Assembly (NCBI GenBank): GCA_030704615.1
Contig: CM060732.1
Span: forward strand, 77,872,001-77,936,000
DNA from: Takakia lepidozioides
Lineage: Eukaryota > Plantae > Bryophyta
Reading direction: 5' to 3'
DNA length: 64,000 bases
Positions 20,637 through 51,200 of this stretch are shown here, one piece after another (within the stretch, counting starts at the first letter, position 1; the number at the start of each line of letters is the position of its first letter). Under the pieces are notes generated by a model. The model was not told the origin of the DNA. It saw nothing but the letters and a program-made list of their open reading frames with translations, and did not search any database. Made by a program: the position numbers and the translations under genes.

Positions 20637-23600
20637 TTTTTTTTTTTTTTTTTTTTTTTTAATAAATATTTTAATATTTTAATTAAATATTAAATTAATT
20701 GATTATTTATTTATTTATAAAGGGGGATAGAGGCCCTTTTAATCAAATTAATTAAAAGTAGAGTCATATCAATGGAAAAAATAACCACTGCAGAGGCCGT
20801 GAGGACTTACTGGGGGGAAACTTCCCCGTAACTTAGCAAAACAGCTAAAAGAGACGAAGGAGAGATCAGAGATTGTTTTATGAGTGTTTGAAGGTAATTT
20901 GAAATGCTAAGAGGGGGGGTAGATGGGAAAGAACATGGCGTAAGAGCAAACAAGGCAGATGAAATCCTGCTGCAACTACTTGATCCAATTTTGCAGTATT
21001 GGTGCTCTAAGAACAATGTAAGGTGTTTTAGAACCAAGAAACAGGAGAGACAAAGAGGGTCGGCAGAAAGGCCCGCCAAAGGGGAGGCTCCAGCCTACGA
21101 GTTCGGAGCTGCAGACCGAGAGGCGAGCGATTGGTGCTTCAGATTCAGAACTTCAGTTGAGTTCTTAACTTTGTAACTCGAGCTCTCTTGTGACGCCAGT
21201 TGTAATCAGCCTCCTCCCCATCACCAGGGGATCTCCCATTGAGTGGGGATGGAGTCATTCCAAGCAAAGCGGTTGTCGGGAAGACTGGTGCCGAGCAGGT
21301 TGCTTTTGCCCTAGGACTGCATGAAATCTTGAAATAGCTTCCTTCCTCGTTGTTCAGAAGATCTGGAAATAGCTGCACACAACGAATCCCATGTTTTTCT
21401 CCCCTCAGTCAACAGATCATGAAAAATGTGGAACAAGACAGATCTGCCTCTGGGGGGCTTGCCCTCATAGACATAGGAACACCTTGACTTCCTGATATTC
21501 CATAAAGTATGGGCTCTAAGCGAGGCCCACACTGGACAAAGGGTTTGCGCTTGACCTGGCACCATGTTGAGAAGCAACCAAGACTGAGGAGGAGGGCAGG
21601 GGTAGGAGGCCCAATGAGAGTAGAACCCCAAAACCTTCCTCCAGATTCTACCCGAGAAATTGCAAGACAACAGGCAATGTTCCATGGACTCTGGTTCTTG
21701 CAAACAGAGAGGGCAGGTAGGATTGTCTTGGTCTGTGGTTAGCTTGACTGGCAGGATTCTGTGGGTCAATTTCCATAGGAAATCCGAGACCTTTGTTGCC
21801 CTGTCTTTCCTCCAGACGTCCTTCCAGATTTTGGCCCAGTTAGACTGAGTGAACTGCAGATTGCTCCATTTTGAAGACCATCTTGCCAAAAAGGTGCGGG
21901 GTGGGTTGATGAGAGAGTAACCCAACTTGACCTTGTAGGCGAAAAATGGTGAATGTTTTTTGTCCATCCAATTCCACTTGTAGGGATCAAATTGCAGATC
22001 CGTCAGTGGGCACTTGAGAAACCAGGTGAATGATTGATGGACAGCCCATTGCGGTGGCATGGGGTTGGCCTTTCCAAGCATATATATCCAGCACCCTGAT
22101 ATGGTATAGGTTCCGCTTGTCCAACGTTATTTCACCAGAGAATGCGAGGTTGCCAACACTGTCTGGTATGAACCCCAATCCTGTGGCCTCCATGTCATGA
22201 ATTTCCAAAATCAGAGCCACTGTTACAGGATTGCGTTGATCCGATGCCATCCAGGCAGGGAGAGTGCAATTGTCCCTGGTCTCATCCAGCAGTGGGAGCA
22301 TGAACTGAGGGATCTGTGAGATGATTGTGTTCCAGGCTTTTGACCTTCTTTGCCCCACTATTCCAACAATGTCTTCCTCTTGAAGGAAATGTCCCTCAGA
22401 TCTGGTGCTTGCAATGTGCGTAAAACCCTGTCCCTCCCAAAAGGCCCATGTGGGGGTTTGCCTTAGCAAGGAATCGGAGTCCATGTTATAGTTGAGAAAT
22501 AGTGGTTGTCGCAGGCATTCCTGCAGCATTGTAGGCATTTTCTGGAAAAGATTACCTCTGAGCGTGTGCCAAGCTCTCTAGATTGATTGCCAAGGTTTGG
22601 AGCCCAACCCAACATTCGCGTTTCTGCCCTGCACTATCCATCTCAGCGAGAAAGCCCAAAGGGGGGAGGATGTGGGTGTAGCTCCCATGAGGTATGGCTG
22701 AATTAGCTTGCTCCATGGGTTGTTGTAGTGCTTGATCGCTCTAGGCACCCACTTTGCCAGTAAGGCCTTAATCTGTGATCCGGGGTCTATAATACCCAAT
22801 CCCCCCTGGCTTCTCTTTTGGCACAACTGGTCCCAGGAGACAAGGGCTCGTCTGATTGGAGTCAATGGGGTGGCTCCCCAGATAAAGTTATGTATGAGCG
22901 CTTTAATTTCCTTGACGAGCACTGGTCCTGGATCCCAGACTGCAGAATAGAACCAAGATGTCGATAGCAGCACTTGATTTGCCACCAAGGCCCTTCCCAC
23001 AATGGATAGCATAATAGAGCTCCAATATGCCAATTTTGCTTTGAGCTTTTGTATGACCCCTTTCATGATGGTTTGCAGTGTGAGTTTTAGCCCCATCTGG
23101 TGGCCCAACAACATATGACTTTCACCCTCCCTGAGCCATCTTAATCCAATGTCATGACCCCATGGTTGGTAGTGAGCGGCAAGACCTCCATTCTGCAGTA
23201 GTGACAAAATTCCCACCGACTTATTCCAATTGACCTTCAAGCCTGTTCCCAAGCAGAAAGTGTGAAGGGATTGCAGTGCTTTGTCAATGTTGCCTTTTGA
23301 CGAGTTGTCGAGCAGCATGGTTGTGTCATCTGCGTACATGGATATCTTGAGTATTTTGGGGCGGTAAGTTGGGAGGTGCAACCCAACAATGTCTGGCCTG
23401 TGGTCCAGAAGGTGTCCGAGTGAGTCTGTAGCAATGAGGAAAAGGAAGGGTGCCAAGGGGCACCCTTGCCTCACAGATCTTGAAATTGGGAAGGAACCAG
23501 AGATGACCCCATTGATCATCACTCTGCTTAAGGCTGAGTGAAGAAGGATGTGAACCCAGGTAAGGAAAGGCCCACCTAGCCCTATCTTTTCTAGAGCTTG

Positions 23601-24415
23601 AAGCAAGAATGTCCAATCGATGGAATCAAATGCCTTTTCGAAGTCCAACATAAGGAAGGCCAGTGGTTGATTGTTTACCTCAGCTCTGTGGAGTGCCTCA
23701 TGAGCCAGCAATATATTATCAAGGATCATCATGTCTTGTAAAAAACCTGTTTGATCATGCCTGATGATGTTGGAGAGGAGAGGTTGCACCCTGAGAGCCA
23801 GGGCCTTGGCTATTATCTTGTAGGTGGAGTTTAGGAGAGTGATCGGTCTATAGTTGGCTATGTTATCCCTTTCTCCTTTCTTAAAGATGATAGTAATGAG
23901 GTCTTCTGAGATCTGGGAGGGCATCAGGTTTTTGTCGAGGATGTCATTGGCCATTAGGAGGAATTCATCATCAATTGTGCTCCACAATGCCTTGAACAAT
24001 TCTATGGGGAGCCCGTCTAACCCAGGTGATTTCATTGACGCCATTGACTGCACTACCAAGCCCAACTCTTCCACTGTAAAGGGAGAAGCCAGCGTTGTTT
24101 TGACCCTTTGTGGTACCAGGCATGAAATATGTTGTATGAGTGTAGCTCTAGCCTGGTCTTTTTCCTGTGAGGGTTGCTGTTGACAAAACAACCTCTGGAA
24201 ATAATTTGCAGCAATCTCCGCCATGGATTTTGGGTTGTCAACCAGCAATCCTGAGGTTGGATCTTTCAGCGCAGGTACTAGTGTGGCGTTTCTCCTTTGA
24301 ACTGCTTTGACAAAGAAATACCTCGTCATTTTTTCCCCTTTCAATGACCAATTGACCCCCCGCCTTGACTCTCATAAACTGTTCTTTTGTGTTTCTACCC
24401 TTCAATTTCCATCTC
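20637..24415 (-). mobile_element. 5'-truncated L1-type LINE (copy A)
   Basis: RT 22578-24344 (NYRPITLLN, DFEKAFD, RQGCPLAP, YADD), zf-RVT-like CPLC...EHC in 21311-22081, poly(A) seen as T-run at 20637-20660. Confidence 0.93.
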
Positions 24416-27400
24416 TCACCCCCCTCCCCCCCCCCACTCCTTTTTCTCAGCTGGATTTTCCCTTTTTGAGGCTTCCCTGTGTTTTCTGTGTTTTATGTGT
24501 TTACTGGCTCTTTGATCGATCCTCTCGGTGCCCTTCCTGCTTGGCGGTTCTTTCACTCCGTTGTTCCCTTCAATGGCCCCCACTAAATTTGCCCGCCGTG
24601 GTGCTCCAACTACCAGATCTCAAAGTCGCTCGGTTGCTGCCATTCAGGCTGCTTTGGCAATCCCTTCCACTGGGACAGGTTTCTTCCAGGCCCACCGCGC
24701 TCTGGCGCGTAGTCGCAGCCCTCCGGCTATGCGGGCAGCTCCGATCCGGGTTCCCTTGGTTGCTCCTCTCTCTCCCCGGCTTAGTCAATCGCCAGTTTCG
24801 GATCCCACCACGCATGTGAGCCCACCCCAGTATACCGGGGCTCCCTCATCACCTCCCCATGCAGTCGACCCCCAGCAGGATGCAGCCGACCCTCAGCAGG
24901 ATCTGATGGAGGATATTTCGGATCTCCAGAGATCGATGAGTAAATCTCACCCTCTTGTGTAGCTCAATATGTCCACAATCCACGATAGTGTCGTAGACTT
25001 TTCGGAGAAAGGGGTGCTTCTTCATTTCCCAGGTAGAAAAGTTGACAGGGATCATGCAAGGGATTGGGCCATCTGTCACTTGGGGGGGTCTGGCGACCTT
25101 AATCATCATTTTTGCCACTCCAGAGGCCAAGGATTCTTCTCGGTTCTTTTGGATTCAAAGGAAGCTGCAGATAGGGCACTTTCCTTCAATCCCCACCTGG
25201 CTGGTTTTAATGTTAACATTTTTCCTTGGTCGAGTGCTATGGGCAACAAAAATGGAAAGGTGTGGAATCCCAGGATCATTGCCTTGCCATATATCCCAGA
25301 CCAATATATCTTCAGTTTGCCCGAGATAGGGAACTTCTTGGGGGAGTATTTGGGATGTTTGGCGGTGTTCGACCCCCACAACTGTCCGGAAGCCCTTAAG
25401 AATAATCTTGCTTGGAGGGGGGCCTCGATTTCATCAAAGGCACATGAGAATGGGTTTCCTAAGATTGTTATAATGATGCCTGATGATGCAATCATCCCTG
25501 AATTTATTCGTCTCCCCATTGATGACAAAGGCAACTTCTTCTCGATTAAATTATCTGAGGACACTACCTCTACTGTCTGCTACTACTGTGGACGTATGGG
25601 GCACCTCAAAGCTGTTTTCCCGAAGGCCCAAAAGAAGAGAACTAGGTCCCCGCTGGGGGCAGAACACCAACTTGCCGCCCCCCCTAAAAGGCACTTCTAC
25701 GATCCGAAGGGGAAGTCCCCAGTCTTCTCCCAGGACTCGCACCATGCAAAGAGGGCGGCATCGAATGCAGGCGAAGGAGACATGCCAGATTGGGTTCCTC
25801 ATGCCTCTACTCATGCTCAGTCACCGAATCTCAACAGGCGGTCTGCCTCGCTAGACCCCATGCTTTTGGAGGCCATTGGCAGTGTTTCCTTGGTGTTTCG
25901 CAACAGGGAAGGACTTGACCCACCGACAAGTAACATCAGGCAAGACGATCTGGGCAACTTCCCCCCCACGCCCCCAGCACCCCTCTTTGGTAATGATCCA
26001 ACACTGCACAAAAGCTCCCTTCATCTCTCCGCATCCTCCTCGATTGCCTACAATCCAGTCATAGCCAGAATTTGCACCAGTCTTCACTCCTTCCCCACTC
26101 TGTCCCTTCCGGGCTCCTCAACCTTGTTTTCTCAGTCCTACCCCAAAGCTATTGGTGTGACTCCATTGATTTTCCGTAGATCCCCAGCTCCTGCCTTCTT
26201 TGCCACGGAGGGCTACGGGGACAGCTTTGAATCCATCTGGATTTCCAATTACGATGTTTCTATTTTCATGGCAAAATCTCCCATTGACTGCAGTCCAATC
26301 CCCACTCTCAGAAACAAGATTAACTCATTCCTTCATTCAAAGTTTCCTCACTATGTGCTCCCAGCCACTGCTCAGGTTACTTGGGGCACTTACATTGAGG
26401 ACCATCCTGCTCTAGGGGTTAACCTTTCGTCTTCTACCCAAATTCTAGCCCTCTTGGAAGAGTCGGACCTGCTACGTACCCAAATGTTGCAGAATGGGAG
26501 ATGGATCCAGCATGCCCCTCAGGACCAGCCTGCCCCGTCCTGCCGGGCTCTCATCAGGGCCAGAGACATTATGCGCAATGGCTTTGCCCTGCTCCAGGCC
26601 CTTATGGAATCGGAATAGGTGCAAGGGATTGAGGAACTTCAGGATCAACAAGTACAAGAATACCAGGGACCTGTCCAGGGCATTGTTCGTGCTGATCCGG
26701 GAAGCCCCACAGCATATCAGTAGCATTAAGCTCGGCCCCAGCCCCCTTACTCATCACCTGGACCGGATGCGAGTGCAAGGGCTCAGTCGAACTTGTCCCC
26801 CCCGACCACCACACTCCTGCCTTCTCCAACTCCGGCTCCATTGGTCTGCCCCCCTGTCGCCCCCCAGTACCCGGTGAGTGGTCTCCCTATTGTCATTCCC
26901 TTCATTATTCTCTACCCATCTCCCTTATGCCCCAACAAAGGTAACGTGTTGCACTTCAGAACCAGGTCACCCCTACCATGTGCTTGGAAAATTCTACCCT
27001 CTATTTCCTACTCTCTATCAGATGGAGACTTTTCGATGTATTTTGGTGCAGGGTCAGGACCTCTTCCCCTCGCCACTCCGGATCCTCTCAGACTTATTCT
27101 TATCTCAGAATTTTTCATGCAACTTTCGGGTAGACCTAGGGTGGTGCGCACTTCATGGATGCCCTGCTCAAAGATTCAACCTCTCCCGGGGGATGATTCT
27201 TTCTACCATCATAGCCAGAGCACTCTTATCATGGCCATAGAATTGGATAAGCCAGTAGATGCAGCCCCTTTCAATCACTTCTGGAAGACAACCCTATTGC
27301 CTTCTGATAAAAGAACTAAGTTCCATTTCCATTCTGACAGGCCATCATTTGAGTCGTTCCCGCTCAGCCTGACACACCCACAAGATGCTGGTTAGTTTCT

Positions 27401-30400
27401 CCTCTTGGAATATAAGGGGTATTGGCTCCGACCACTCAGCCCTAAGAAAATTAGGCTGAGAGCATGGCTGGCCCCCCTTATCCCAACTGATGCCATTGTC
27501 TTTTTGCAGGAACATAAGCTAGATGATCTCAAAATTAGGAATCTTTCTGATAACATGTGGCCTCTTGCCTCCGCTCTCTGGAAGCCTTCATCCAAAGGTT
27601 CAAAGGGAGGAACATCCATCCTCCTTTCCCCTTCCATAAGACAATTTTTGGTGAAAGATGAAACTTGGGAGCTGGGTAGAGTCCAATTCTGCTCCCTGTT
27701 GCTCCCGTCAGACCTGGAACCCTTAGGCCTGGTTAACATTTATGCCCCTAATAATGCTATGGATCGTTCTGCCCTGTGGGAGTTGATTAACTTAAACATT
27801 TGCAGCCATAAGGATATCAACAACTGGGTTCTTGGGGGGGACTTCAATATGGTGGAAAATGACTCGGATAGAAGAGGATCTGTGACAACACCCCTCAACC
27901 CGGAGGAAGAGGCAGTTTGGCAATCTCTCCTCCAAACTCACAGCCTGGTGGAAATCCTCCCCGACACCCATCTCAATCTAGGCTCCTCCCCTCACTTCAC
28001 CTGGTCCAACAATAGGGCACTGGAACACCTCAGTATGGCCCGCCTGGATAGATTTTACCTCTCATTGCCTTTATCCATCAATGCTACTAGAAAGCCGCAG
28101 GAACCCATTACCCAAGGTTTTGATCACACCCTCATTGAAGCTTCACTGTCTTTCCCTAACACTCATCGTAGAGGTAGGGGTATCTACAGGCTAAACTTCT
28201 CCCTTCTCAATATTCCATCCTTTAAGCAGGCATTAAAGGATGATTGGCATAATTCAGGCAACCATTTAAGCTGCCCCATAGAGAGGTTTTCCTCTAAGTT
28301 GGCGGCTACCTCCAGATGCAGCCAGATCCTTAGTAAAGGCATTGCTGCAACCAGAACTAGGAAGGTTAGGGCCCTTAAAAAATGTCTTGGGGTATGCCAA
28401 ACAAAAATCGAATCTCGCGCTTGCGATGACCACACGTTTCAGACTTACCTTGAGGCCAGATTCAATCTGGGGATCTTTCAGGATCAACAACAGGAAAAAA
28501 TGCGTATGCAAGCAGGGGTCAACTGGTCTGCCAAAGGGAGAAAATGTCTAAGTATTTCTTTCAGAAAACCAAGCTTAGAAGGGCTATGTAAACCATTCCT
28601 GAATTGTAACCAAGAGCCCTAAAAGGTTAGTTGCCCCTTCAGCCTGGCTATAGTGGGCCCCAGACGTTGGTCTTCCGAGAGATTAATCCCGAAGACATGG
28701 CCCAAGAGGGTGGTGGACTCTCCATCCTTGAGCCAGATCAAACCCAAGTTTGCCCCCCATACGGGGGAGACCCCCAGACCAGACTTTGAAATATCCCCCA
28801 CCTGAAGAGCCTTGGTTTTCGACCAATTCACCCTGAAACCTGATACCTTGCAAAAGGTGTCAATCGTGCATTGGGCTGCTTGTAGGGCCGCTGGCTCAGC
28901 TTGAAGCAGGAGAAAGGTGTCATCAACAAACATAGAATCTTTGATCTGAAGGGCAGCATCAGCTCTGAAGCCATGCATTTGAAGGCCCCTCACTACAGGG
29001 TTAACCTCCAACATGTAACCCAAAGTGTCCGCCACAAACAGAAAGAGGAAAGGCGAAAGAGGGCATCCCTGTCGCACCGATCTCTGTAGGGCAAATGGTT
29101 TTGACAAATGGCCATTTATAATAACCCTGCTGGAGCTGTTGCGGATAAGGATGTTAACCCACTTGTAGAACGGGCTCTGGTGGCTAACCAGATCCTTTTG
29201 GCCGGTATTTGGTATTTCGCCTCTACTTGGAGTCCCAGCTCTAAACAATCCACGAAATCAAAAAGTGTATTAGGAACTTTATTTGGGGGGCCCATTTGTT
29301 GGACTCTAACAAACGCCTCCAAGTTTCTTGGATTCAAATCATAATGCCCAAGAAAATGGGTGGCCTCGGCGTCTTGGATCCTAAAACCCAGATCAAAGCC
29401 CTGTTGGGAAAATGGCTCCCCAGATTCCTGAGTCCAGAAGGAGGTTGGTGGAAAGTTATGGTGACAGATTCTATTTTCCTCAGTTCACCCCTGAATTCCA
29501 CTCAATGGTCTCCATCTCTGAGATGGATCACTCAAGGTTATCGTCATAAATCCCTTGGTTCCTCCCTTTGGACCTCGATTTGGTTGGCTTGGGGGAAGTG
29601 CCGACCCTTCCTGCGAAAGAGAGAGCCTGCTTCCTTTTGTGAGGTGCTCAGGCAACACCTGTTCCTCAACAAGCCAGTCCCTTAGTTATGGAGAGGAGCC
29701 AAGCCACAAGGTGGGCAGGATGGGATGCAAGGGGGCTCTCACAGGTCAGCCATCTATGGTTCAGTACCCCTGTTTCTCTTTCCAGAACTCTTGGCACCCA
29801 AAGACTCTCCGCCGACATTGCCTCAGTTTTGCAATCAGTTCCAGACTCGTGGAGAGACATGCTCAGGCAGGGCCCTTCCTCTCCGTCTATGTATCAGTGG
29901 GTGACCACAACGGATCATCATTTTCAGGTCATGTTCATAACGGAAGCCTCACGTGTTAACCTAGTGGGTTTTGCATTCAAGGCCCATCCGTATACAGGTG
30001 CTCTCTCGCTGCACTCATCCGACTCTATCTCAATCCCAAATGCAAACACCCCACCAGCCGGAATCTACCACTGGAACTCCAAGCTCAAAGATTTTAATCC
30101 ATCCCTTCCATCCAACACGCGGGTTCTACCCTGGTTACGATCAGGAACCTTCATTTGGATTGGAGGCCAGGCCATCCAGGACCTACAAATCGATCCGGCA
30201 GAATGGCACTGGGAATTCGGGGACAAGATTTGCTCCTTCTTCAATTACACGGCCAAGGGTGCCTACAGAGCGATGCTGAAGGCCAAGCCTCTAACCAAAA
30301 AATGGGACGACAGATGGGGCTTATTCCAATTTAGAGGGGAAAACTGGAAGTGCATTTGGGCTCTGATTTGGGAGAAATCCAAATCGGCAAAACTCAGTGC

Positions 30401-31437
30401 CTTTCTTTGGCAGATTGCAAATAGGGTTTTGAAGGTTGGGCAATTTCTAAACTTCCAAGAGGCCCTACTCTGCAGATGCTGCCCCATTAGGGTTATTGAA
30501 TCTTTGGAACGCTGCCTTCTTTTCTGTAAAGGGCCGTCAACTATCTGGCCCTTGGTTTGGTCACTTTACAGGGTTTGGTCAAACACCGCTCAGGACCCCA
30601 TAGCCCTCCTGCTAAATTACAACCAAACAACCAAGTCCAAGGTGTCCACATGCCCAGTTTTTGAGGCCCTCCGCTCGGCAACACTGTGGCAAATCTGGAA
30701 GGCTCGGTGCAGATGGACATTAAACAATGCTTCCTCCTCCTGTACAGAAATCCTAGCATGTGTTTTCTATGATGTTACAATTGCAGCTAAGTTGGCCTGG
30801 TAAAAACTATGTGCAGAAGCAGACAAGAAACCAAAACGAAAAGACTCCCTCCTCGCCTCCTTCAGAGCATCTTGGGGAAGAGGAGGAATCATTTGTTGCA
30901 TCACTGATACAGACTCCTGTTCATGGGCAGACTCCTTACCTGAACTTTGGAAACACCGATGGGGCACCGTCTTCGGCCTCCTCTGATCTGGACTCGAGAG
31001 ATATTAACTGGAAGCACATAAAGAGGGGATCTAAATCTAAGTTGATCTTCCTCAGATAGACATCTTCAGAGTTTCGCTCCTTGGCCGTTCTAGCCTGTGT
31101 TCTTACTGTTCGTCGTTCCGTCCGGTTCCATCTACACGGGGCCACCTCTCTCTTGGAGTCTTTTCGAAGCTATGAACTAATCGCACATTAGCTCTCTACG
31201 CTATGGCAAATCTTGCAACCAATATTAGATGGCTCTACCAGGCCTACATGCGTAGCCAGGTCTATTTTCTACCCTGTTATCTGATCGTTGGAATCTCCAA
31301 CACGGCCTCCGTGTGTTAAGCCTCATGGCACTTGTAAGGGTTTAATTTTTTCCCTTTTTAATAAATTTTCAGGGCCTCTCATCCCTTTTTAATAATAATA
31401 ATAATAATAATAATTTAAAAAAGAAAAGAAAAAAAAG
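24416..31437 (+). mobile_element. L1-type LINE (copy B): ORF1, endonuclease, inverted and partly deleted RT, 3' end
   Basis: ORF1 from 24573 with knuckle CYYCGRMGH; APE endonuclease 27405-28622 (FLQEH, NIYAPN, GGDFN, RLDRFY, FDH); C-terminus 29160-30990; (TAA)n and A-rich tail 31390-31437. Confidence 0.9.
28608..29175 (-). other. Inverted RT segment within LINE B
   Basis: Minus strand PFYKWVNIL...RQGCPLSP...FVDD...LKGQLTF between plus-strand LINE parts. Confidence 0.9.
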
Positions 31438-32375: not shown

Positions 32376-33425
32376 ATGGATGGGCATGTCGCGGCACGAT
32401 CACAGTTCTTCCTTTTCGCGCTTCTGGCATTCTGTGGCGCTGATGCCGCAGGTTCATGCCTGCCAGCCGAGAGGGATGCGCTACTGGCGTTCAAGGCGGG
32501 GATCAAAGAGGATCCCGTCAACATGCTGCAAGGATGGTTGAACAACACCGACTGCTGCGCGTCTAACTGGCTCGGTGTGGGCTGCGACGCCAACGGCCAT
32601 GTAAAGCAGCTAGATCTGCGCCCTGACCCTGCCTCCGACGAAGGCATCTACCTGACTGGCACCATTTCCACATCCCTGGCCTCTCTTCCCCAGCTAGAGT
32701 ACCTGGATCTGAGCGACTTGCTTAACCTGTCAGGAATTATCCCAGAGGAACTCGGGACGCTAACAAATCTGCAGCATCTGGATGTGCGGAACAACAAGCT
32801 GACAGGACCGATTCCACCGTCTTTCGGCTCCCTCACCAACCTCAACTGGCTCAGCCTGGGTGGTAACTACTTCAACGGCTCCATCCCACCTGAGCTCGGC
32901 AGCCTGGGCCCCAAGCTAAACTACCTCTACCTCTCCGGCGGGTCGCTCACTGGAGTCATCCCGCAATTGATCTTTCAGCTCCCCAACCTCACCAATCTTT
33001 ACGTGGGTTCGAATAAGCTAACGGGAAGCATCCCCACAAACCTGAGCGCCCTCGCCGGTACTCTGCAGTACCTGGACCTCTCCATAAACAATTTGACAGG
33101 CAACCTACCCGCAAACATCGGGGAACTCAATCAGCTCGGCCTTCTGGATGTGTCCTCGAATGCGTTTACTGGCACCATTCCTGCTAGTATTGGGTTGATC
33201 TCAGGACTACGCAACTTAGCGCTCAATAACAACACATTCTCTGGACACATTCCAGCTGCGCTTGCAAAGCTCAAGGACCTGGTATACGTGGACCTGGCTA
33301 ACAATAACCTAACGGGGCCCATCCCCCAGGGTGCCCCCTTCTCTACGATTGGAGACTTCTCCGGTAATCCTGGTCTTTGTGGGAGTCCACTCCCTGCGTG
33401 CAAGAGCAGGCGCTTACGTTTGTGA
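32376..33425 (+). CDS. Secreted extracellular LRR protein (PGIP/RLP-ectodomain-like), 349 aa
   Basis: Signal peptide, LRRNT (CLPAERDALLAFK...W.GVGCD), ~9 plant LRRs (LxxLxLxxNxLTGxIP), C-cap GNPGLCGSPL; no TM or kinase. Confidence 0.93.
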   Translation: MDGHVAARSQFFLFALLAFCGADAAGSCLPAERDALLAFKAGIKEDPVNMLQGWLNNTDCCASNWLGVGCDANGHVKQLDLRPDPASDEGIYLTGTISTSLASLPQLEYLDLSDLLNLSGIIPEELGTLTNLQHLDVRNNKLTGPIPPSFGSLTNLNWLSLGGNYFNGSIPPELGSLGPKLNYLYLSGGSLTGVIPQLIFQLPNLTNLYVGSNKLTGSIPTNLSALAGTLQYLDLSINNLTGNLPANIGELNQLGLLDVSSNAFTGTIPASIGLISGLRNLALNNNTFSGHIPAALAKLKDLVYVDLANNNLTGPIPQGAPFSTIGDFSGNPGLCGSPLPACKSRRLRL

Positions 33426-36393
33426 AGAAGTTCGGTCCCTCGCTTCTAAGTGACGGATTGCAGGAGTATACAGCAAATGTCAACATTGCATCGTGCAGAT
33501 TAGGTAGGATGGTAGAATTTGCACCTCTACATTGAATCGGTTCCTTCAAATCAGTTCTCAAGGTTTCAAGCTTAAATAATGACCAACTGGTATCTAAATT
33601 ATTTTCAAGTCATTCCAGAAGTTGAGGAACCCTAGCCACTATGAAAACACTTCTCCATGATGACCATGATAGCTAGCCTACAAGGACTTGTGTAGAACGA
33701 TCGCTCACATTTGCAGAATACATGTTCTTATACACACATCTCACCTTTGTTCAATCCTTCCTTCCTTCTGTCCATGTTTTCTGTCATAGTCTAACTCCAA
33801 GTTCACGAGATTGCAGCTTTACAAGCTTTGCAAGCTTGGCCAGACTTTCAAAGAATTTGCAACATTTATAGATCAACTTTTTTAGACCATTACACTTTTA
33901 GAACAGCTCTATCAATCAACGAGAATGTGATCACTTGCATTTGAGAATGAGGGAGAACTCACAGCTGGTTTGAGTCCCAATGGTGATGGAAGAATCTGAT
34001 TCATGAGCGTCTGGGAGACAAGTGACGCTTTCGAGAAATGTGTTGAGTCTTGACCAACTTCATGCACTACAGATAGAGTTCAAGCATACGCACATCCTCG
34101 ACATCGAATTAACCTGCAGCGGTCAGGACAACATTTCTTTGTAAGTAGCAGGAAAATACTCACTGATTAATACCCTCAAATTCATACCACATGCAGGGAT
34201 AGCTGAAGAGCGAAGCCCCGAGCACATCAGAAGAGGGGCAGTGTATGTACTGTTTCCTGTGGGCGGGCTTGTGCTTAGGCATTTCTGTAAGAGAAGGGGC
34301 AAAGCAAGATGCACAAAGCAGCATGTGCGTGCCGCCGAGCAAACACTTGGCCATCATTCCACTAACTTACGGCAAATAAAGAAATTAAGTGAAGTTCAGG
34401 GAACATATTCCTTTCCCAACATCTGCTGATCCAGTACTTCCAGTCCATCCACAGACAAATCAATCCCTTCTAGCGCAGAAGACCATCAACGATGTTACTG
34501 TTCACTGGGCTGCTGTTAAAGCACGTAACATGAGAGAATCTTCCCGAACCCTTCTTCTTGTGTAAGCAGACTCTCCCGAACTTAAGATCTGAGCTTGACG
34601 ATGCTCAGCAGCTGGTTCGGCACAAATCTATATTGGATCGTATATCAACAGCATATCGAATGGGGTTTTATAAATTCGAAATCTGTATATGACATCTAAG
34701 TATTGAGAATATCAGTAGAATCTAGTGTATATGCATCAATGTACCACAGAATCAACACATAGATGCGATTTATATTCCTTCTCCTCAACGCTTCCCTCTC
34801 TCGATCTAGCGAGAGATTTGTTCTGTTGCGAGTGCAATCGATGATCAGACGTGACATTTCCTGCTTTCTCAATCTTCTCGCAGGTCTGGTCTCAGAATAC
34901 AGAGAGGGTACAGGAAGGCTAGCTGGCCAAGGCCCAACGCTTGAGCTTGGCCGCACACCCACCCTGATGAATGACACTGGGCTGCGAACTCACCATCGGA
35001 TCCGGACGACCGAGGGCTGCTGAGAACCAGAACACGTTACAAAGTGGGCTACCAAGCTGGTAATGGAGTACAGGACATGGTGGAAGCCCAAGCACAGAAA
35101 GAGCAGGAGTTGTATGGAGCTCTTGACAGTCACTTTCAAACTTCATGTTTCTCTTGGAAGTTCTTCTTCCTGTTTCGGGGATTAGTCAGCAGCACACTTC
35201 GTGTTTACATCTGAAGCGTGCACAGATACAACAGGGGAGCAAGTGCATTGCTCAGGCCCGGAGATCGTACAGATGATTGGTTCCACAAAGGGAAATGCGA
35301 CTTGACATCTGAGGAGTAGGTGTAAGGGGTTCTCTGCTTTTGGTACAATGAGAGCTTAAAAGTCCACCCGACATATCTAATATCTCCACGGAGTACATTG
35401 TGTCCCACAGCCGAGGCGACCGATTGCAAGCCCTGTACAAGACCATCTACATACATAATTGAGTTGGTGCCTAGCTTGCCGGCGATGGGGTAAAGTGTAA
35501 ACAGTATGATCAGGCCGTGCCTACATCCTTCAATCTGCTCTCTCCGTGGGTCATCCTTGTTGAATACTGAGAAAAGCTGCCCTTGCCGAGAGGTATGAGC
35601 ATGGGACGGACGGATTTCTTGGCGTGTGAACCAGCCTTCAGTCCACGATCTTCTTCCCACATTCTCCTACAGCCTCCAAGAAATGGTACAGTAAAAGAAG
35701 GTTCTAAGGAAGGCTGTTATACTAGACATTGGGTTTTGCAGTCCACTTCATCCTCCAAATGGACTGAATCCAACCTCGTACACGATGCAGTAATAAGTCC
35801 TCCAAGACCAACTGACATCCACCAACAATTCATCCCTCACATCGGTGTCACAACAATGAAACTGGTGGCGATTTGGAAAATGAGATTTCAAAAGGAGAGA
35901 TTGGAAAAGAGGGACACAAGGGGAGCGACAAGGAAATGCAGATGTCACTGGACACTGTCACACAGTTTTTTTTTCTGCGACAGAAACTTGTGCACAAAGA
36001 GATGTGTGAGAGATCTAAAGGAGTGGTGGTAGAGAGGGGGTGGGATGACCGTGGAGAGACGGACAGAAGGGTAGAGCGATCTCAAGCTTTAGATTAGGGA
36101 CACCCTTCGTGGAGCTGCTTCTGTAAGGCATTGTGCGACTCATATACACCGAGAAAGACGAAAAAAATAAGACTTCATGACGTGGGGAGAGAGAGAGAGA
36201 GGTGACAGTGGGAGAGACTGGTTGAACTCTCCCAAACCGTGGGAGAGACGATGGCATAAGAGGGCTGTAGGCTGTCAACTTATCCACGGGACGTAGATTT
36301 CCACGGCTTGCTGTACAAGCTTCCTAGCAGGCAATCAACCCAAATTATGGCATATGATTGAGGAGAAGACGGTGGCCAGAAGGACGAACCGAA

Positions 36394-37542
36394 ATGGGAG
36401 GGGAAGTAGGCAAGGATCTGACTGCCGGAACAGTGGCAGGAGTGGCACAATTGCTGATTGGCCATCCCTTCGACACTGTCAAGGTCAAGCTACAGAGCCA
36501 GCCGGCCCCGTCCTCTGGACGACCCCGAAAGTACAATGGTGCCATAGATGCCGTGAAAAAAATCTTAGCATCTGATGGTCCAAGAGGTTTATACAAAGGC
36601 CTGGGGGCTCCCCTGGCCACCGTTGCGCTCTTCAACGCAGTCCTCTTCACTGCAAGAGGACAGATGGAAGCAATGCTCCTGCACGACAAGCCGGGATCAA
36701 AACTCTCTGTCAGACAGCAAATGGTGGCCGGTGCTGGAGCTGGAGTCGCAGTCTCCTTTGTTGCGTGCCCAACAGAGCTTGTCAAATGCAGGCTTCAAGC
36801 TCAGAGCGACCTGGAACCCACTGCAAACACACCCGCTCCAGTAACCATGAATGGGGCAGAGGGGATGGGGATGCTGTCTCTGCTCCCTACCGCTCACCAC
36901 AGCAGCTCTGTGGATCCACCAGCTTCTGCCGTGCCCTCGCCGATTGTAGAAACTCTTATGGCTGAACTAGGTGAAAAATTGCAGCCAGCTCCTCCTCTAC
37001 ACACTGCTCCTGCACAAACTGATTTCACAACAACAGTAGGAATCCCCGTCCATGGGGCAGCAGCCCCAGTGCAGCAGCAGGGAGGAGCTGGTCCATACAA
37101 TGGATCCATGGACGTAGCTCGGCAGGTGTTTCGATGTGAGGGAGGGTGGGCGGGATTCTTCAAGGGAATCGCTCCCACTCTGTTGCGAGAAGTGTTTGGA
37201 AACGCTGCCTACTTCGGTGCATACGAAGGCACGAAGCGGCTGATTGCGAGAGGGCAGGACACGGCAGTGCTGGGCATGGGGTCGCAGCTGCTGGCGGGTG
37301 GGGTGGCAGGGGCCATGTTCTGGCTGTCGGTGTATCCCGCAGACGTGATCAAGAGCGTGATGCAGGTGGACAGCTACCGCAACCCCAAGTACAAGGGCAC
37401 CATGGACGCGTTTCGCAAGGTGTTCGCAGCCGAGGGCGTGCGAGGACTCTACCGCGGCTTTGGCCCCGCCATGGCTCGCAGTGTCCCTGCCAATGCTGTC
37501 TGCTTTCTTGCATACGCTCTTGTCAGGAAGAGGCTTGCCTAG
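36394..37542 (+). CDS. BOU: Mitochondrial carrier (SLC25), carnitine/acylcarnitine carrier-like (A BOUT DE SOUFFLE-like), intronless
   Basis: KDLTAGTVAGVAQLLIGHPFDTVKVKLQSQP; three Px[DE]xxK motifs (PFDTVK, PTELVK, PADVIK); C-terminal GFGPAMARSVPANA. ATG at 36394. Confidence 0.9.
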   Translation: MGGEVGKDLTAGTVAGVAQLLIGHPFDTVKVKLQSQPAPSSGRPRKYNGAIDAVKKILASDGPRGLYKGLGAPLATVALFNAVLFTARGQMEAMLLHDKPGSKLSVRQQMVAGAGAGVAVSFVACPTELVKCRLQAQSDLEPTANTPAPVTMNGAEGMGMLSLLPTAHHSSSVDPPASAVPSPIVETLMAELGEKLQPAPPLHTAPAQTDFTTTVGIPVHGAAAPVQQQGGAGPYNGSMDVARQVFRCEGGWAGFFKGIAPTLLREVFGNAAYFGAYEGTKRLIARGQDTAVLGMGSQLLAGGVAGAMFWLSVYPADVIKSVMQVDSYRNPKYKGTMDAFRKVFAAEGVRGLYRGFGPAMARSVPANAVCFLAYALVRKRLA

Positions 37543-41309: not shown

Positions 41310-42701
41310 AAGTGGGGCCACATTCTCTTGAAAGGGACTTAATTTGAAAGAGATCTCGAGGAAGGACCATGCCACGAAAGTTTTGGCCTTCCTATGGAAA
41401 CTGGCGCATAGGATCCTCCCAGTAAATGCAACCTTGCAGGATACGCCACAGAACTGCTTGAACATTGTGCCCGGCTGGTTCATAAACAATCGACACTGTT
41501 TTTTGCAATGCCCTCGGGCTAAATCTCATCCGGAAAGAAATCCTTTAGTTCTACTCTAACTGGAGGTTGGGTAGCGTGAGCATGCTCTCACGTGAGCACA
41601 AGCAAATATTAAGGATATTCCCTAGATGCCTTTCGAATATTATCCAGCGAAACTAAAATTGAGAAACTAAAAACTTTGCGAAACTTTTTTTAGTTTCTCA
41701 CATAGGCCCTTATAGCATTACTTAAGAACAAGTAACACCTATACACGATAAACATGTTACCCTATAGGCGTGGGGTTTCCTCACATGATACCGCAGAAAA
41801 CCCCATAAAAACAAAAATCGTGGTTTTCAGTCCGGGTATCAATAGTTTAAGGCATAGAAAAGTTATTTTCACACTGAGAAAATAAATCTGAAGGTACTCA
41901 TATGCACCGTGCCTATTAGCGTGTAATTCTTATGGCTGCGGTTTGAAAATATTTAACCCCTATGACCGCGGGTTGTGCTCACGCCGTGCTCAAAGGATAC
42001 CAACCCCCCTCTAACTGGAAGGCTTTCCCACCTTCCCCTCCCTCCTCTCTCATTCTTCTTAATATTATTTTGGGTAACCTAGGCTTACCTACCCAATCTG
42101 GGCGTGCTTTAGAGCACATACACTGTGGAATTTGTGGAAGGCAAGATGGAAATTTGAGGGGATGTCCCTCAGCATCAATAATGTTTACTATGATATGATG
42201 ACTGAGGGGAGAGAGGCATGGGTATCCTTGAGATCAGAGGAGAAGGCTTCTCCAAGATTTCGATATCACATGGGGCAAGGGTGGTTGGCTCGGCGCCCGT
42301 GTTTCCGACCCAAGGGTGCAATGGAAAGACACAATCCCCACGCAATGGTAAGACCCATGGTGGTGAGAGGGATGAAGGGGAGTGTAACTGGAGACACAAG
42401 CGTGCACGGGAAGCACAACTTACATGGGCATAGACAAGATATCATTTGGAAGATCACGTGCTTTCTCACCGTCTCTTTTACGGCATTATGTTTCTCCTGT
42501 TCCTACTCCTTTTGTCATTCCTCTTATCATTCTTCCACTCATAAATTAGCACTTTGAACTCATCTCTTTTTCCCAGCATCTTAGTCACGGGGTGATTCCC
42601 CCTTTGTAAGCCTTAACGGCTCCACAGTGGTTTTTTTTTTCCACCCAATGCAATACAAGGGGGGAAGGAGCCTTAACTGCTCCTTTCCCAAAAAAAAAAA
42701 A
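41310..42701 (+). mobile_element. Degenerate 3' fragment of an L1-type LINE (copy C), split by a MITE
   Basis: KDHATKVLAFLWKLAHRILPV, HCFLQCP, WKARWK, WKDTIPTQW, poly(A) 42690-42701; similar to the copy A C-terminus. Confidence 0.8.
41562..42008. mobile_element. MITE, possibly hAT-type, inserted in LINE C
   Basis: Imperfect TIRs GGTTGGGTAGC...GTGAGCACAA / TTGTGCTCAC...GATACCAACC; flanking duplication CTCTAACT(GGA) at 41554 and 42009. Confidence 0.7.
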
Positions 42702-42961
42702 CGTCCATCGACAGAATCACCTTCGAGAGGAGTTCACTTTCTGCCTCCCCCCCCCACCGTCACCCCTTTTCTTTATACATACTATGGTAGCATGTGCTGT
42801 TGGCCCAAGTGTCAAGTGTCATATAAGCCCAAGTGCAATCCCTTATGTATGCAGGTGTGTCTCCTATGTCGAGGCCCAAGTGCGACCTCTAGGGTAGCCT
42901 CTGCAGTTAATGGCCCAAGGGTCCAAATGTCATCTAAGTCCAAATGCATTTTTTTTTTCCA

Positions 42962-43046: not shown

Positions 43047-44361
43047 ACTTTGCTATTTTTCGGGAATTTCCAGCGACCCAAAGTACTTGAAATTCCACAT
43101 CTCCCATACCGCGGGTCCAAAAATCATGAGGCCAAGCCCGTGTACCCCTCCTTGCTGAGGGCTTTCCAATGGTACCAAGCACCAGGGCTGGGGCCTTGCG
43201 GTTGGGGACATCTCAAATCTACAAAACGAACAAAACAAAACAAACGTCTCGCTTCATATATTAGATATTATATTATTTAATTATCTACTGAGCTTATCGC
43301 ACCAGTAACTCACCAACCTCTTTTTTTTTTGGTCTCATCCTATCTAGCATGTCTACTAAGGATTAATTCCTCATATATTCTGATTTGTTCAGTTATACTA
43401 TTAATTTTATTTCATTATTTTGCCTAATATCCAAAAATAATTAGTAAAGTTTATAAAATTGATGGTTTCTCAAAATGATAAATAATTAAATAAAAGAGTA
43501 AGATGGTTTACTAGGTGACCATCATTTGTGAAGAATGACATGTGCACTATATTATATTAGAGTTTTTCTCTTAAGAGAACTATAAATAAATAAATTTTAC
43601 ACTCTCCATGTGGATTGTCACCAAGTCCAAATTAGACTCAAATCTTCAAGTCCCCGGCGACTCATCCCGCATAGAAAGGGTCTAACGACATGTTCTAGTT
43701 GGGGGAGTCTCGAACATCTGTTCCTGGTCCTACAATGTGCTAAAGTGTGGAAAGGTCGGCGTCATACTTTGGGAGGCATCATACTTTTTTTCTTTTTTTT
43801 TCTTGTTGGAAGGACGTCGATCCAAAGGTAAGAAGCTATTTTCTTTTTTCTTTTTTTTACAATGGCACAGAAAGGCTATAGAATATAGTGAATTGGGAAG
43901 GAAAAAATAATCTGGCATGACAGGCCATGGACGCTGAGAAACTGCGGGCTTGCCAACTTTTTTTTTTCGGAAGGAAAATAAAGAGAAACACCCGGGAGCG
44001 GGCCTGCCAACTTGCTTGTGGAAAACATGATGAAATGCATCGTGTCAAAAATAATATTTAATACATATTTTTGGGCCGATTGGGAAGATGATCTGTGCAT
44101 TGAAATGTCATGCAACGTGTAAAACTATACTGTTGGCAAATTTCATGGGAGAAAATAATATGATTCCTAAGAATGATGAACGTGATTTTGCTTATTATAT
44201 CCCCTACAACACTAAATGGTATTTTCTTGGAGAGAAAATGATAATATGATAAAATCGTATATATTTAATACTTTTATAATCTTAAGAGGGATTTTTTAGC
44301 AGGGTTTTACAAAACCTTACAAAAATGAGTTATAATAACCACACTCTCAAGGATGATTTTT

Positions 44362-44493
44362 TTGGGTGGTGTCCCGTGCGAAAGCCTTCAGGCGAGGTTA
44401 CTGTGAAAGAGGTTTTTTTTCCTCTCACTACAATTAAGGGGCCTGGTTTGTGAGCTGTCGCTCCCAAGTGTTTCCCTTTATGATTAAAAAAAA
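44362..44493 (+). mobile_element. 5'-truncated copy of the SINE at 58436
   Basis: GGGTGGTGTCCC...GGTTACTGTGAAAGAGGTT...TTTGTGAGCTGTCGCTCCCA plus A tail shared with 58523-58649. Confidence 0.7.
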
Positions 44494-47328: not shown

Positions 47329-47390
47329 GACACCTTTGTGACACTAATTGGTGGATTGAATCCACAACCACGCTTGAGGTTGTATGTGCC
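47329..47390. repeat. Short dispersed repeat; inverted relative at ~51697-51753
   Basis: ACATAC.ACCTC...TTCAATCCAC...TGTCACAAA(A)GGTGTCCAC shared; contains a B-box-like motif. Confidence 0.55.
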
Positions 47391-48707
47391 CACTAGTACA
47401 TCTTGGTTGGCGCGGTAGAGAACTATAGGGTCCATCTAGTCTCCATCATCATTATTATTATTGGCTGCCTATATGGCAATTCGAGAAAAACACACGACAA
47501 TCTCATGGGAAAAAAACTTAAAACAAAAACGAAAACCCTTAAAAATTGCTGAAAATTCCTCTTTTTAACCACTACTTCCTAATGTAAGCTCCCCTCATCC
47601 CTCCTAAGCTTACACTACAGTGGTAGTTAGGAGATGGAGGTGTACACCAGTGTTGGTCTGGTATCTTGAATTGGAAATACCAGAAGGGTCCTGGTATGCA
47701 GTGCTGATTTTTTTTAAGGCAGGGAGGTTTTCCAATAATGCATCCCCTGATTTCTCCAAGTATGAATCTGGTATGCATAGAGTGGTTTGTTAAGAAAATC
47801 AATCCGGATATGAGCAATGGTATCTGAATGTCAATAACCTAGAAATATGAGCTTGATATGGTATTAAAAAATAATAAAATAAAAATGGTACTAGTATTCA
47901 GATTCAAATTCAATATTGAAATGGCCATATGAACTATTCAAATGGCCATAGGATACCAACACCCATACAATTATACACTGAATCAGAATTGCATCCATAG
48001 TGTCTCGCAAAATGAAGATCATAAAGAGGCGCTCATAAACACATGAAACCATATGTGTATATTAATATGATACCCGAATAGACCTGCAGCAAGGAGTCGA
48101 GCTCTAGTAGGGGCCGGCGAAGGAGAACCCGAACCGCCGTCTGGTAGGGTTTGGGGGGGGGGCGGGGAACTCGAGAACCTTCCGGTAGGGTACTACAAAT
48201 GTTTACGGGGACAGAGAACAGTAGGTTAGGTGAGGAGAGACCCGGGTTGATACCCGACGAAACCAGGTACCACCAGACCAACACTGGTGTACACATGATG
48301 TTTATAATGAGAAGCTAAGAGAGAAATGAGAATCATGATTAAGTCAACAAATTAACACTTGTCTAAAAATCTGCAATTTATCACTATTATTATTTTCTAT
48401 TTTTATTACTATTAAAAAATATTTTCATGGTAATCATGGATAAAGAAGCGTAAACTAAGGAGTTTTTGGCAAAACTTGAAACAAGAAATTTGCCAAATCA
48501 ATTCAAAAATTGAGTGACTCAACCCTTCCGGCCGGAAGGCAGGCGCCCTTGGGGATCACATTCCGTCCCAACCAACCAACAATCATACATCCATTCATTG
48601 ATCAACCATTAACCAATCTCATCCGATACATTAACTGCCCAAGAAGTTCATTAAACTACTTATCAGTCACTAATCAATGCGCCGTTATTCAACCAAATTG
48701 CGCTGAA

Positions 48708-49365
48708 TTGTACTTATGTCGTAAGTAACTTTATTGATTGTGCATTTACTAACCTACTAATGGAGTTAGTATGTAGTAAATTGGCGGGGGAATTTGTCTA
48801 CGGATCCAACGGCTCTACTGCTCAAGGTCACAGCAGATCCCTGATCTCATCCGACGGCTTATGAGAAGAATCGGAATCTGAAATGAACGGTCCAGATACT
48901 TTCCTATCGGATCCCAGACTATGGGTGGATGAATGCATGCCTGCCAGGCTTTAGTTATCATCCGTAAAGCACTGCTCGATTCACTTTGTAAACATAGTGA
49001 CGGAGTTTCTGTTTGCTCCGGCTGGGCAATTTCTGGATTAAGACTCTCCGCCCAAGCATTTTCGTAATCTGGGCCAAGAGGGAGATTTTTGAGTGGGCTT
49101 CACAACAACGTAAAAACCTACGGGTTTTTTCTCTTTGTATTTTCAGGGAGCTTACATGGCGGAATGTCACGTCAACAATGGGCGGGGGATATTACGCGGC
49201 CCCGGGATCTTACGTGTAATTTCCCTAGGGATATTATGCGTAATTTCCCTAGGGAGATTATGCATGCCATCTTTTCCTTACAATGTCATCTTTTATGTTA
49301 GATGCCCCAATCTGAGCCGTCCAAAGCGAAAAGAAACCCTATGTCTTTACGCAACGTAAGTACAA
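48708..49365. mobile_element. Possible MITE
   Basis: TTGTACTTATGTCGTAA / TTACGCAACGTAAGTACAA inverted termini; no TSD established. Confidence 0.4.
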
Positions 49366-49934
49366 ACCCTCGGGCTGGTACCTTAGTATTCATGTGGTGA
49401 CCTCGGGCTGCGCCCTGGGTCATTCCCCTCACACCGTGGTACACCCTCGGGTGGGGGACTTACCCTATACGAAAAGTCTTCCCCAAGTGTCCGTGAGAGA
49501 TGAGCCTATATGTTTATAGCCTATACAGGGGCACGACTCTCAAGCAACCCTTTTTTTTTCATTTTTTCTTGGGCGTGGATGTGGCGAAATATTTTTGGGA
49601 CTGAGTACAAAGGTGGCGACAAGTACAATGTCCACCTAGAATCCACTTGGCTACAAGTACGGAACATATTGTGCAATATGGCGATGAGACGGTGCAATAT
49701 GGCAATATGGTTACTATATATGGCTACAATATGGCTACATATATATACACAATATGGCTACCCAACCCCGGGAGAGCAGGAAAAAACCAGCATGAGCTCA
49801 ATCCACGAATTTGTTTGCAAACGAAAATACAAATATTATGCGGAGATATGGTACTACTATGTTAATAAGGTTGAATATATAGCTAAAACCCTCTCCTAGT
49901 AAAACACAAATATTTAATAATGAATAAGGGTTTT

Positions 49935-51200
49935 TTGTAAATTCTCAGGCAACCCCAACCCATTGCCTCCGATGGATTTGAAACAGTATGGTAAGAATTT
50001 CCGCTAGTTTTTATCAGCCCCCCTTAAGCTGCTACAGTTTGACCCTGGGGAGTGGATATGGATGAATAAGGGACATGATCCCTTCCTCAAATATTCGGTT
50101 AAGTTGGGGTACAAGTTGTTGATGCCTAAAAGAGGTTTTGACCGTAAGTGGTCTTTAAAGTGGCTACATCTGCTTGGATCTGCGGTGCCGTGGAAACTAG
50201 TTTGGGAGACATCTAGAAAAAACACACATTTGTTAAGATAATGGCTTTCATGTGGAAGGTGGTTAACGGAATCTTGCCAGTGGCAACCTGGCTGCTAATG
50301 AAGACTTGGAACATGCCTTGGTGTTGTGCCCTTTCGCTCGAGTTGTTTGGGACAAGGCCCTTTCTCTATACTCTTTCTGGTCTTCTGACTTGGATTCATC
50401 TCCCTCGGTTTTGCTGCTTAATGCTAAGAATGGCAGAATGCACTCTTCTTGTCCAGTGTGGGAATCTCTCAGGGGGATAATCCTTTGGCAGCTATGGAAA
50501 ATGAGGTGTTGTGTGGTGTATCAGAAAGAGAGGCCGTGTGTGCAGAAAGTTCTTTATCTGGCTCACTCAGACCTTAGGTCTGAGGCTCGCAAAGCTTGGT
50601 TTATTTTGCTTGCAGCTCTAAATTCCAAGTGTCACAGCAATCGAAGACCCCAACTCTTTGCCAAGTTCGACGAATCTTGGGGGAAGGACTTTGTTTTCTG
50701 CAGGAGAATTGAAGACACAAGAATTGTGTGGGAAGACTCCTCCCCTGCTTGTTGGAAGCTCAACTAGTACGAAACAGACTCCGCTGGAGAATGAAGACAC
50801 GGAAATAAATTGGAGACACAAACGTAGTGGCTCTAGGAAAGCAAAAGCAAAGACACAGCTTACTTATGAGGGTCCTAAGAGGAAACGAGGCAGTATATAG
50901 GATGTTTTTCTGGCAGACTAGGTCCTGCTCTCCTTCTTCTTGCTCGACAGGTTCATCTCTGTAGGGTGGACACTTCAGCTCTATCTTTTCTCCTCACTTC
51001 TCCCTGTTTTCGACTATGTCAGGAATTAATTCCTACTTAGTCTAGATTCATCTTCCTTGATTTTTGTAATGTTGGTTTTGAGTGGTACCTCTGTAATCTA
51101 CCTTATGGCTCTCTGTAAGGTTATGTTTTCCTTATCTCTTCTTCAATAAATTTGTCAGGGCTACAATTCCCTGTCATCTATAAAAAAAATAAAAAAAATA
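49935..51200 (+). mobile_element. Degenerate 3' fragment of an L1-type LINE (copy D)
   Basis: AFMWKVVNGILPV, EHALVLCP, CPVWESLRGIILWQLWKMRC, WEDSSPACW, A-rich tail ~51180-51200. Confidence 0.85.

Follow-up and report, generated by a model that had tools for sequence, protein, structure and literature searches.

A conserved +1-frame tail after ORF2 in a clade of plant L1 retrotransposons, and its possible expression by recoding

Background

Can a long interspersed nuclear element (LINE) encode protein beyond the stop codon of its second open reading frame (ORF2), in a frame other than that of ORF2 itself? The question is raised by a stretch of 64,000 nucleotides (nt) from the bryophyte Takakia lepidozioides (GenBank assembly GCA_030704615.1, contig CM060732.1, positions 77,872,001 to 77,936,000 of the forward strand), hereafter the window, which holds four LINE remnants between 21 and 51 kb, referred to as copies A, B, C and D. 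An earlier note on this DNA had described a +1 frame that overlaps the end of ORF2 in all four copies and continues past its stop, and had proposed a third protein or a frameshifted extension of ORF2. Our comparison of these copies with relatives outside the window indicates that one plant L1 clade encodes a module of approximately 25-45 residues directly after ORF2, in the +1 frame.

The usual description of LINEs gives them two ORFs, and both the regulation of the ORF2 protein (ORF2p) and its delivery to chromatin are poorly understood outside mammals. A review of recoding covers frameshifting in the gag of HeT-A and the unresolved expression of ORF1 and ORF2 in LINEs, with nothing downstream of ORF2 (PMC5009743), and the only extra coding regions in a eukaryote-wide survey of L1 elements are ORF0 and antisense ORFs (PMC5203782). 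No plant LINE ORF3 was found in the literature searched, in which an ORF2 followed by an out-of-frame coding tail is likewise undescribed. If the reading developed below is true, a trans-frame extension of ORF2p would constitute a third expressed module in a major plant retrotransposon clade, and recoding would extend to LINE ORF2.

Results

The end of ORF2 and the tail that follows it

Copies A to D are plant-type L1-clade LINEs. Pfam recognized RVT_1 (2.3e-33) and zf-RVT (8.4e-11) in copy A, on the minus strand, and Exo_endo_phos together with a weak zf-RVT in copy B; copies C and D were tied to the same kind of ORF2 by tblastn cross-matches. As in other L1-clade elements, their 3' ends are A-rich or poly(A), without long terminal repeats, and the C-terminal ORF2 motif W-x-[LYD]-x-x-P lies a few residues before the stop. 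The copies are old and strongly diverged: identity among their ORF2 C-terminal domains is 30-42%, A and C are the closest pair yet share only ~70% of their DNA, and stops or frameshifts occur in every copy.

In all four, ORF2 ends in a gapless block, SWG[KR]-x8-[ST]D-x4-WxD[ST]xPxxW, a longer segment that contains the W.D..P..W recognized in the earlier note. The pattern WxD[ST]xPxxW is found in A-D and in L004, a relative described below, and related ends occur in other clades (P0004-6, P0013, P0017, P0051). We define the linker as the interval from the last base of the Trp codon of P..W to the Asn codon of the tail motif; it is 3n+1 nt long in each of the four copies. The tail itself consists of an acidic run, [YCI]NW[RK]H[KI][KR], a basic run of variable length, [QK]Lx[FWY], 0-10 further residues and a stop. 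These features are as follows.

Copy A, 21236..21355, minus strand: final conserved ORF2 block ..S*GK..D....WNDSIPTQW, interrupted by a stop at 21313 (aligned without gaps over 40 codons with B, C and D)
Copy A, 21202..21235, minus strand: linker from P..W to the N codon, 34 nt (3n+1); ORF2 TGA at 21223-21221
Copy A, 21145..21228, minus strand: +1-frame tail PGDGEEADY-NWRHKRAR-VTKLR-TQLKF and stop
Copy B, 30831..30950, plus strand: final conserved ORF2 block ..SWGRGGIICCITDTDSCSWADSLPELW (gapless alignment)
Copy B, 30951..31005, plus strand: linker, 55 nt (3n+1), AG-free over its first 46 nt; ORF2 TGA at 30984-30986
Copy B, 30970..31059, plus strand: +1-frame tail SSASSDLDSRDI-NWKHIKRG-SKS-KLIF-LR and stop, its conserved part beginning upstream of the ORF2 stop
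Copy C, 42229..42348, plus strand: final conserved ORF2 block ..TWGKGGWLGARVSDPRVQWKDTIPTQW, in an element that is 5'-truncated and frameshifted upstream
Copy C, 42349..42385, plus strand: linker, 37 nt (3n+1); ORF2-frame stops TAA at 42349 and TGA at 42364
Copy C, 42356..42433, plus strand: +1-frame tail HGGERDEGEC-NWRHKRAR-E-AQLTW-A and stop
Copy D, 50306..50767, plus strand: open ORF2 C-terminus, from the end of zf-RVT to ..VWEDSSPACWKLN and its stop
Copy D, 50756..50807, plus strand: linker, 52 nt (3n+1); ORF2-frame stops TAG at 50765 and TGA at 50792
Copy D, 50784..50900, plus strand: +1-frame tail LENEDTEI-NWRHKRSG-SRKAKAK-TQLTY-EGPKRKRGSI and stop

The +1 ORFs of the earlier note were recovered where it had placed them. 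Measured from stop to stop they span 21408..21148 on the minus strand (A), 30757..31056 (B), 42206..42430 (C) and 50622..50897 (D), with stop codons at 21147-21145, 31057-31059, 42431-42433 and 50898-50900, and the peptides DYNWRHKRAR..TQLKF, DINWKHIKRG..KLIF, ECNWRHKRAR.AQLTW and EINWRHKRSG..TQLTY are exact. The pattern [DE]xNW[RK]H occurs at only these four sites in the six-frame translation of the window, and repeated stops interrupt the ORF2 frame along the tail of each copy. The first ORF2 stop is recorded as TGA in all copies, which the xxT-GAN codons of the acidic run account for with no further explanation needed; the +1 codon overlapping the UGA is GAU, GAG or GAA. The TAG of copy D (50765) is aligned with the Trp codon of A, B and C.

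Selection on the tail as a protein

The region downstream of ORF2, which adjoins or overlaps its end, is conserved as protein. For an ungapped 10-codon block compared in five lineages, the mean pairwise BLOSUM62 score was 3.68 in the tail frame versus -0.07 and 0.07 in the other two frames, both of which contain stops, and 0 of 20000 column shuffles reached 3.68 (p<5e-5). Pairwise nucleotide differences in the tail frame were distributed as 32/33/65 over codon positions 1/2/3. Within the 8-codon core, synonymous sites are saturated in the tail frame, with a proportion of nonsynonymous differences (pN) of 0.26 and a ratio of nonsynonymous to synonymous proportions (pN/pS) of 0.24, versus 0.99 and 1.36 in the other frames, so that the frame-specific comparison bears out the coding interpretation of the earlier note.

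The codon swaps that the note had listed (CGT/AGA, AGA/CGT, AAC/AAT, AAG/AAA) were also confirmed. At the same tail sites Arg is spelled CGT, AGA or AGG and alternates with Lys AAG, Lys-Arg swaps involving up to three bases; Asp and Glu appear as GAT, GAC, GAG and GAA, Asn as AAC or AAT, and His as CAC or CAT. A signal residing in the nucleotides or in their structure would not tolerate multi-base Arg/Lys swaps that keep the residue class. We regard it as highly probable that the tail is under purifying selection as a protein in the +1 frame, and consider the coding claim strong. The consensus of the module comprises an acidic run, D/E-x-N-W/F-R/K-H-x-R/K and, in most lineages, a basic run with Q/K-L-x-aromatic. 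The membrane tail that had been suggested beyond the TAG or TAA was not upheld, as nothing aligns after the tail stops and the hydrophobic read-through corresponds to the pyrimidine-rich 3' untranslated region (UTR).

Position of the change of frame

The C-terminus of ORF2 had been taken to be coding in two frames at once, an interpretation that the substitution patterns do not support. Over the 40 codons before P..W, pN/pS in the ORF2 frame lies below that in the +1 frame in 8 of 10 pairs (0.58 vs 1.28 for B-L004, 0.53 vs 0.75 for C-D), and the +1 frame is unconstrained there, with values of 0.67-1.35. In the Pro codon of P..W only the third base varies (CCC/CCT/CCA), which is silent in ORF2 and would change the +1 residue. 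Upstream of the motif, 183-252 nt of the +1 frame are free of stops in A-D, a distance within the normal +1 stop spacing of these ORF2s. Such an open frame was not found in a second clade of tail copies (clade E, described below), where a +1 stop stands 38 nt short of the end of P..W.

The pattern is reversed further downstream. Copies B and L004 share the +1 sequence SSAS-[SP]-[DE]-[LF]-D-x-x-D-I-N-W-K-H, with their differences concentrated at +1 third positions, while the same DNA in the ORF2 frame reads GTVFGLL versus ALLFRFPRV, each before a stop. This +1 conservation starts ~11 codons before the Asn, upstream of the ORF2 stops (-22 in B, -16 in L004). The distribution of constraint around P..W thus locates the frame switch within a few codons after it (five codons remain between P..W and the TGA in copy A), and the comparisons place the change of constrained frame inside the linker.

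Constraint on the +1 frame upstream of P..W is seen in A-C only, one of the ten pairs. As the earlier note had observed, both copies read SAPVFPT in +1 (21283-21303, minus strand, in A; 42294-42314, plus strand, in C), with five differences that all fall at +1 third positions (permutation p ~0.005, uncorrected for ten pairs). The run is real and unusual, and we leave it unexplained.

Tail copies outside the window

A search of 1.84 billion representative proteins with a profile built from the ORF2 C-terminus retrieved 2232 relatives, only three of them at E<=1e-30. Neither the ORF2 end block nor the tail motif in frame was found among the best 150 of these relatives, and annotation that ends at the ORF2 stop would miss the module. 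One relative, P0082, contains the related DVNHRN for the sole reason that this protein was called across the frameshift in a decayed copy, L003. In word searches, the +1 ORF of A gave no candidates, the ORF2 C-terminus of A had no match at E<=1e-5 (a cut-off stricter than the default), and the 67-residue tail-containing product of L004 retrieved only itself. A metagenome scan with the ORF2 C-terminal profile found two distant L1s, both without a tail; five +1 ORFs had no match in Pfam, the +1 ORF of D had none in the ESM Atlas, and cluster look-ups returned singletons throughout.

The public contigs behind the closest matches contained five further tail copies (L004, L001/L002, L003, L009 and L008). 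L004 resembles copy B, with ~80% DNA identity in the best-conserved part only; its ORF2 ends in ..VWPRQTPPQW and is followed by a linker of 55 nt and the +1 tail SSASPEFDKSDINWKHVRAPTKTKLSYFP with its stop. Clade E, which comes from other sequencing runs, is represented by L001/L002, L003 and L009, with linkers of 67, 61 and 49 nt, respectively, all 3n+1, and +1 tails that end, before the stop, in ..GDVNFHHLL (L001/L002), ..HDVNHRNVRM (L003) and ..SHEFEKGDVSFRHVRY (L009). L009 and L004 can be aligned over S-x-E-F-[DE]-K-x-D-[IV]-[NS]-[WF]-[KR]-H-V-R, with codon changes that are synonymous and multi-base.

Linker length is therefore 3n+1 in 8 of the 9 copies (34, 37, 49, 52, 55, 55, 61 and 67 nt, seven distinct lengths). 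The exception is L008 (clade E, 1800-2200), whose linker of 45 nt leaves the tail motif in the ORF2 frame behind a single TGA; a second frame break lies inside its tail, and the copy appears decayed. The tail is absent from L005, L006 and L007, three L1s of other clades, in the last of which the ORF2 stop runs almost directly into poly(A). Present in A-D, L004 and clade E but not in L005-L007, the tail is therefore confined to a single clade, in which it is old.

Discussion

Possible expression of the tail

We infer that the tail is a C-terminal extension of ORF2p produced by +1 recoding in the linker, and give this reading, which comprises both the frameshifting and the fusion to ORF2p, an even chance. 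A fraction of the ribosomes translating ORF2 would shift to +1, or undergo an equivalent recoding step, in the linker after P-x-x-W and before or near the ORF2 UGA stop. Two isoforms of ORF2p would result, a short one terminated at the UGA and a longer, minor one with an acidic-aromatic-basic tail. Because +1 conservation begins upstream of the stop in B and L004, the shift probably occurs elsewhere than at the stop itself. Recoding is favoured by protein-like evolution confined to the +1 frame, the deep divergence of the carriers, a frame that stays fixed while the linker changes in length, the constraint on the ORF2 frame before P..W, the lack of a conserved AUG and the restriction of the tail to one clade.

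Several observations weigh against recoding. Only nine tail copies are available, from about six independent lineages, and all nine are decayed, so that the state of the active element has to be read from comparison between lineages. No conserved shift-prone site or slippery heptamer was found in the copies compared, the codons between P..W and the first ORF2 stop differing in every lineage. Minimum free energy (MFE) folds of 122 nt around the ORF2 stop, in which pseudoknots and 5' elements were not modelled, gave neither a shared helix nor unusual stability (z -0.27 to 0.67).

Between the two options of the earlier note, a frameshifted extension of ORF2 fits better than a third protein. A separate, overlapping ORF3 would have no conserved start of its own: the open +1 frame of D, L001 and L009 lacks an ATG altogether, the ATGs of the remaining copies stand at non-homologous positions, the frame is closed in clade E, and the +1 reading is unconstrained upstream of P..W. 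We rate as unlikely a small separate product, for which ribosomes would terminate and reinitiate at the ORF2 stop or close to it, or else start at a non-AUG codon in the linker. In its favour, every ORF2 stop falls inside the acidic start of the tail or just ahead of it, the missing slippery site would pose no problem, and unconventional ORF1-ORF2 reinitiation is known in LINEs (PMC5009743). However, the tail frame has no AUG near the ORF2 stop, stop and start do not overlap, near-cognate codons are not conserved either, and UGGGA, resembling a termination upstream ribosomal binding site, is present in copy A only. The tail would on this model be reached much as ORF2 is after ORF1 in human L1 or in SART1, the latter through UAAUG coupling. 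As +1 conservation in B and L004 already sets in 4-6 codons ahead of the ORF2 stop, translation would need to restart upstream of it and at a non-AUG codon, and would yield a peptide of 25-45 residues without a start signal.

It is less probable still that a processed transcript carries the tail in frame, through a splice or a one-base change at the RNA level. Mammalian L1 transcripts undergo splicing, and the linkers of A, C, D and L004, which are GA-rich, offer AG dinucleotides, but the linkers measure merely 34-67 nt, no conserved GT..AG pair or pyrimidine tract was found in them, and a donor further upstream would delete the conserved ORF2 end. The 46 AG-free nt that follow P..W in copy B leave no splice acceptor before the conserved +1 segment. 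A one-base change at homopolymers finds little substrate, since runs in the linkers are of 3-4 nt in A, B, C and D, with a longer C run in L004 only, and none is conserved in position. Least probable, and disfavoured by us, is that the tail goes untranslated, as an RNA or DNA signal of the 3' region or as the relic of a once in-frame C-terminus. LINE 3' regions do bear recognition structures, and the present copies have conserved hairpins in their 3' UTRs; a signal of this kind, which the earlier note had named as the explanation to be set against coding, would nevertheless have to accommodate Arg and Lys codons swapped by two or three bases with the residue class kept, linker indels kept to multiples of three, and the lack of a structure signal in the MFE folds. 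With synonymous sites saturated at a pN of 0.26, a relic would have decayed long ago.

Three further routes were considered and set aside. Ribosome hopping from the UGG of P..W to that of N-W is incompatible with the conservation of the intervening acidic run and Asn as codons. Transcriptional slippage fails on runs that are short and not conserved in position, the G-run of copy A standing after the stop, and a shift exactly at the UGA fails on the +1 conservation upstream of it in B and L004.

As to the function of a recoded tail, we offer a guess: with the look of a short linear motif, it might serve in nuclear import or in contacts with a host factor or nucleic acid. The tail motif matches the Atg8-interacting (LIR) pattern, acidic residues followed by [WF]xx[ILV], in 5 of the 9 copies; the tails of A, C and D resemble nuclear localization signals instead (KRAR, PKRKRG). 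Tentatively, and with somewhat less than an even chance, this may be the first case of a LINE ORF2 with programmed +1 recoding at its end, the motif D-[IV]-N-[WF]-x-H-[IVLK]-[RK] controlling where or whether the retrotransposition complex acts. Mutation of the tail motif should then separate the enzymatic function of ORF2p from a targeting or regulatory one.

Comparison with known systems

The arrangement proposed here resembles that of antizyme (UCC_UGA_U) and RF2 (CUU_UGA_C), in which a +1 shift near a UGA gives a C-terminal region in a new frame; the +1 codon over the UGA is GAU in antizyme and GAU, GAG or GAA in the present copies. It differs from both in that no P-site codon is conserved, in that no pseudoknot or 5' stimulator was found in MFE folds that model neither, and in that +1 conservation in B and L004 begins upstream of the stop. 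Ty1 (CUU_AGG_C), Ty3 (GCG_AGU_U) and closterovirus ORF1a/1b likewise obtain a longer isoform from a low-efficiency +1 shift, and some +1 shifts of this kind lack stimulatory signals (PMC5009743). Their shift joins parts of Gag-Pol or of a replicase, whereas here a short tail would be added to the C-terminus of a LINE ORF2, and the Ty1 and Ty3 heptamers are absent from these copies.

Non-standard translation is also known in non-LTR elements (PMC5009743), namely the UAAUG of SART1, reinitiation at ORF2 of human L1 and frameshifting in the gag of HeT-A, but these cases concern ORF1 or gag, or the ORF1-ORF2 junction, and none lies downstream of ORF2. Short extra coding regions of L1 comprise ORF0 of primates and an antisense ORF over ORF1 in panda and other mammals (PMC5203782). 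Those are antisense, 5' and lineage-restricted within mammals, in contrast to the plant tail, which is sense, 3' and tied to the ORF2 frame.

Other features of the copies and their surroundings

The remaining parts of the four elements are as follows.

Copy A, 21311..24344, minus strand: decayed ORF2 with RT (reverse transcriptase) and zf-RVT domains (Pfam, tblastn map)
Copy A, 20637..20660, minus strand: poly(A), A24, the 3' UTR running from 21144 down to it
Copy B, 24969..30803, plus strand: near full-length decayed L1 with ORF1, followed by APE (apurinic endonuclease), RT and zf-RVT (Pfam)
Copy B, near 31391-31437, plus strand: 3' end, (TAA)n and an A-rich stretch
Copy C, 42690-42701, plus strand: 3' end, A12
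Copy D, 51182..51200, plus strand: A-rich 3' end, preceded by a short terminal hairpin CAGGG..CCCTG

ORF1 of copy B carries a zinc-knuckle-like CYYCGRMGH. Within the same copy, the central RT at 28622-29173 (plus strand) matches the RT of copy A on the minus strand (40% identity, E 1e-36), which would make it either an inverted RT segment or copy B a composite.

The 3' UTRs of A-D share modules near the poly(A), at 20690-20870 (minus strand), 31270-31400, 42560-42715 and 51060-51185. These consist of a hairpin ACGGGG..CCCC (ACACGG..CCGTGT in B) and then GTAAG..ACGGC..CAGTGG-T-run, and in all four copies a short terminal hairpin, AGGG-loop-CCCT, directly precedes the A-rich end. The shared modules probably represent the 3' recognition structure of the family. 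In copy C, a GC-rich inverted repeat at the 3' end, GGAGCC..GCTCC, stands between a T10 run and an A12 run (42640-42701, plus strand).

Two other ORFs were observed on the plus strand. Between copies B and C, positions 32376-33425 encode 349 residues with LRRNT_2 and leucine-rich repeats, of the plant LRR receptor-like type. Just upstream of copy C, an unbroken ORF of 394 residues (36358-37542) has four matches to Mito_carr (E 7e-69) and may represent a mitochondrial carrier gene without introns, or a retrocopy.

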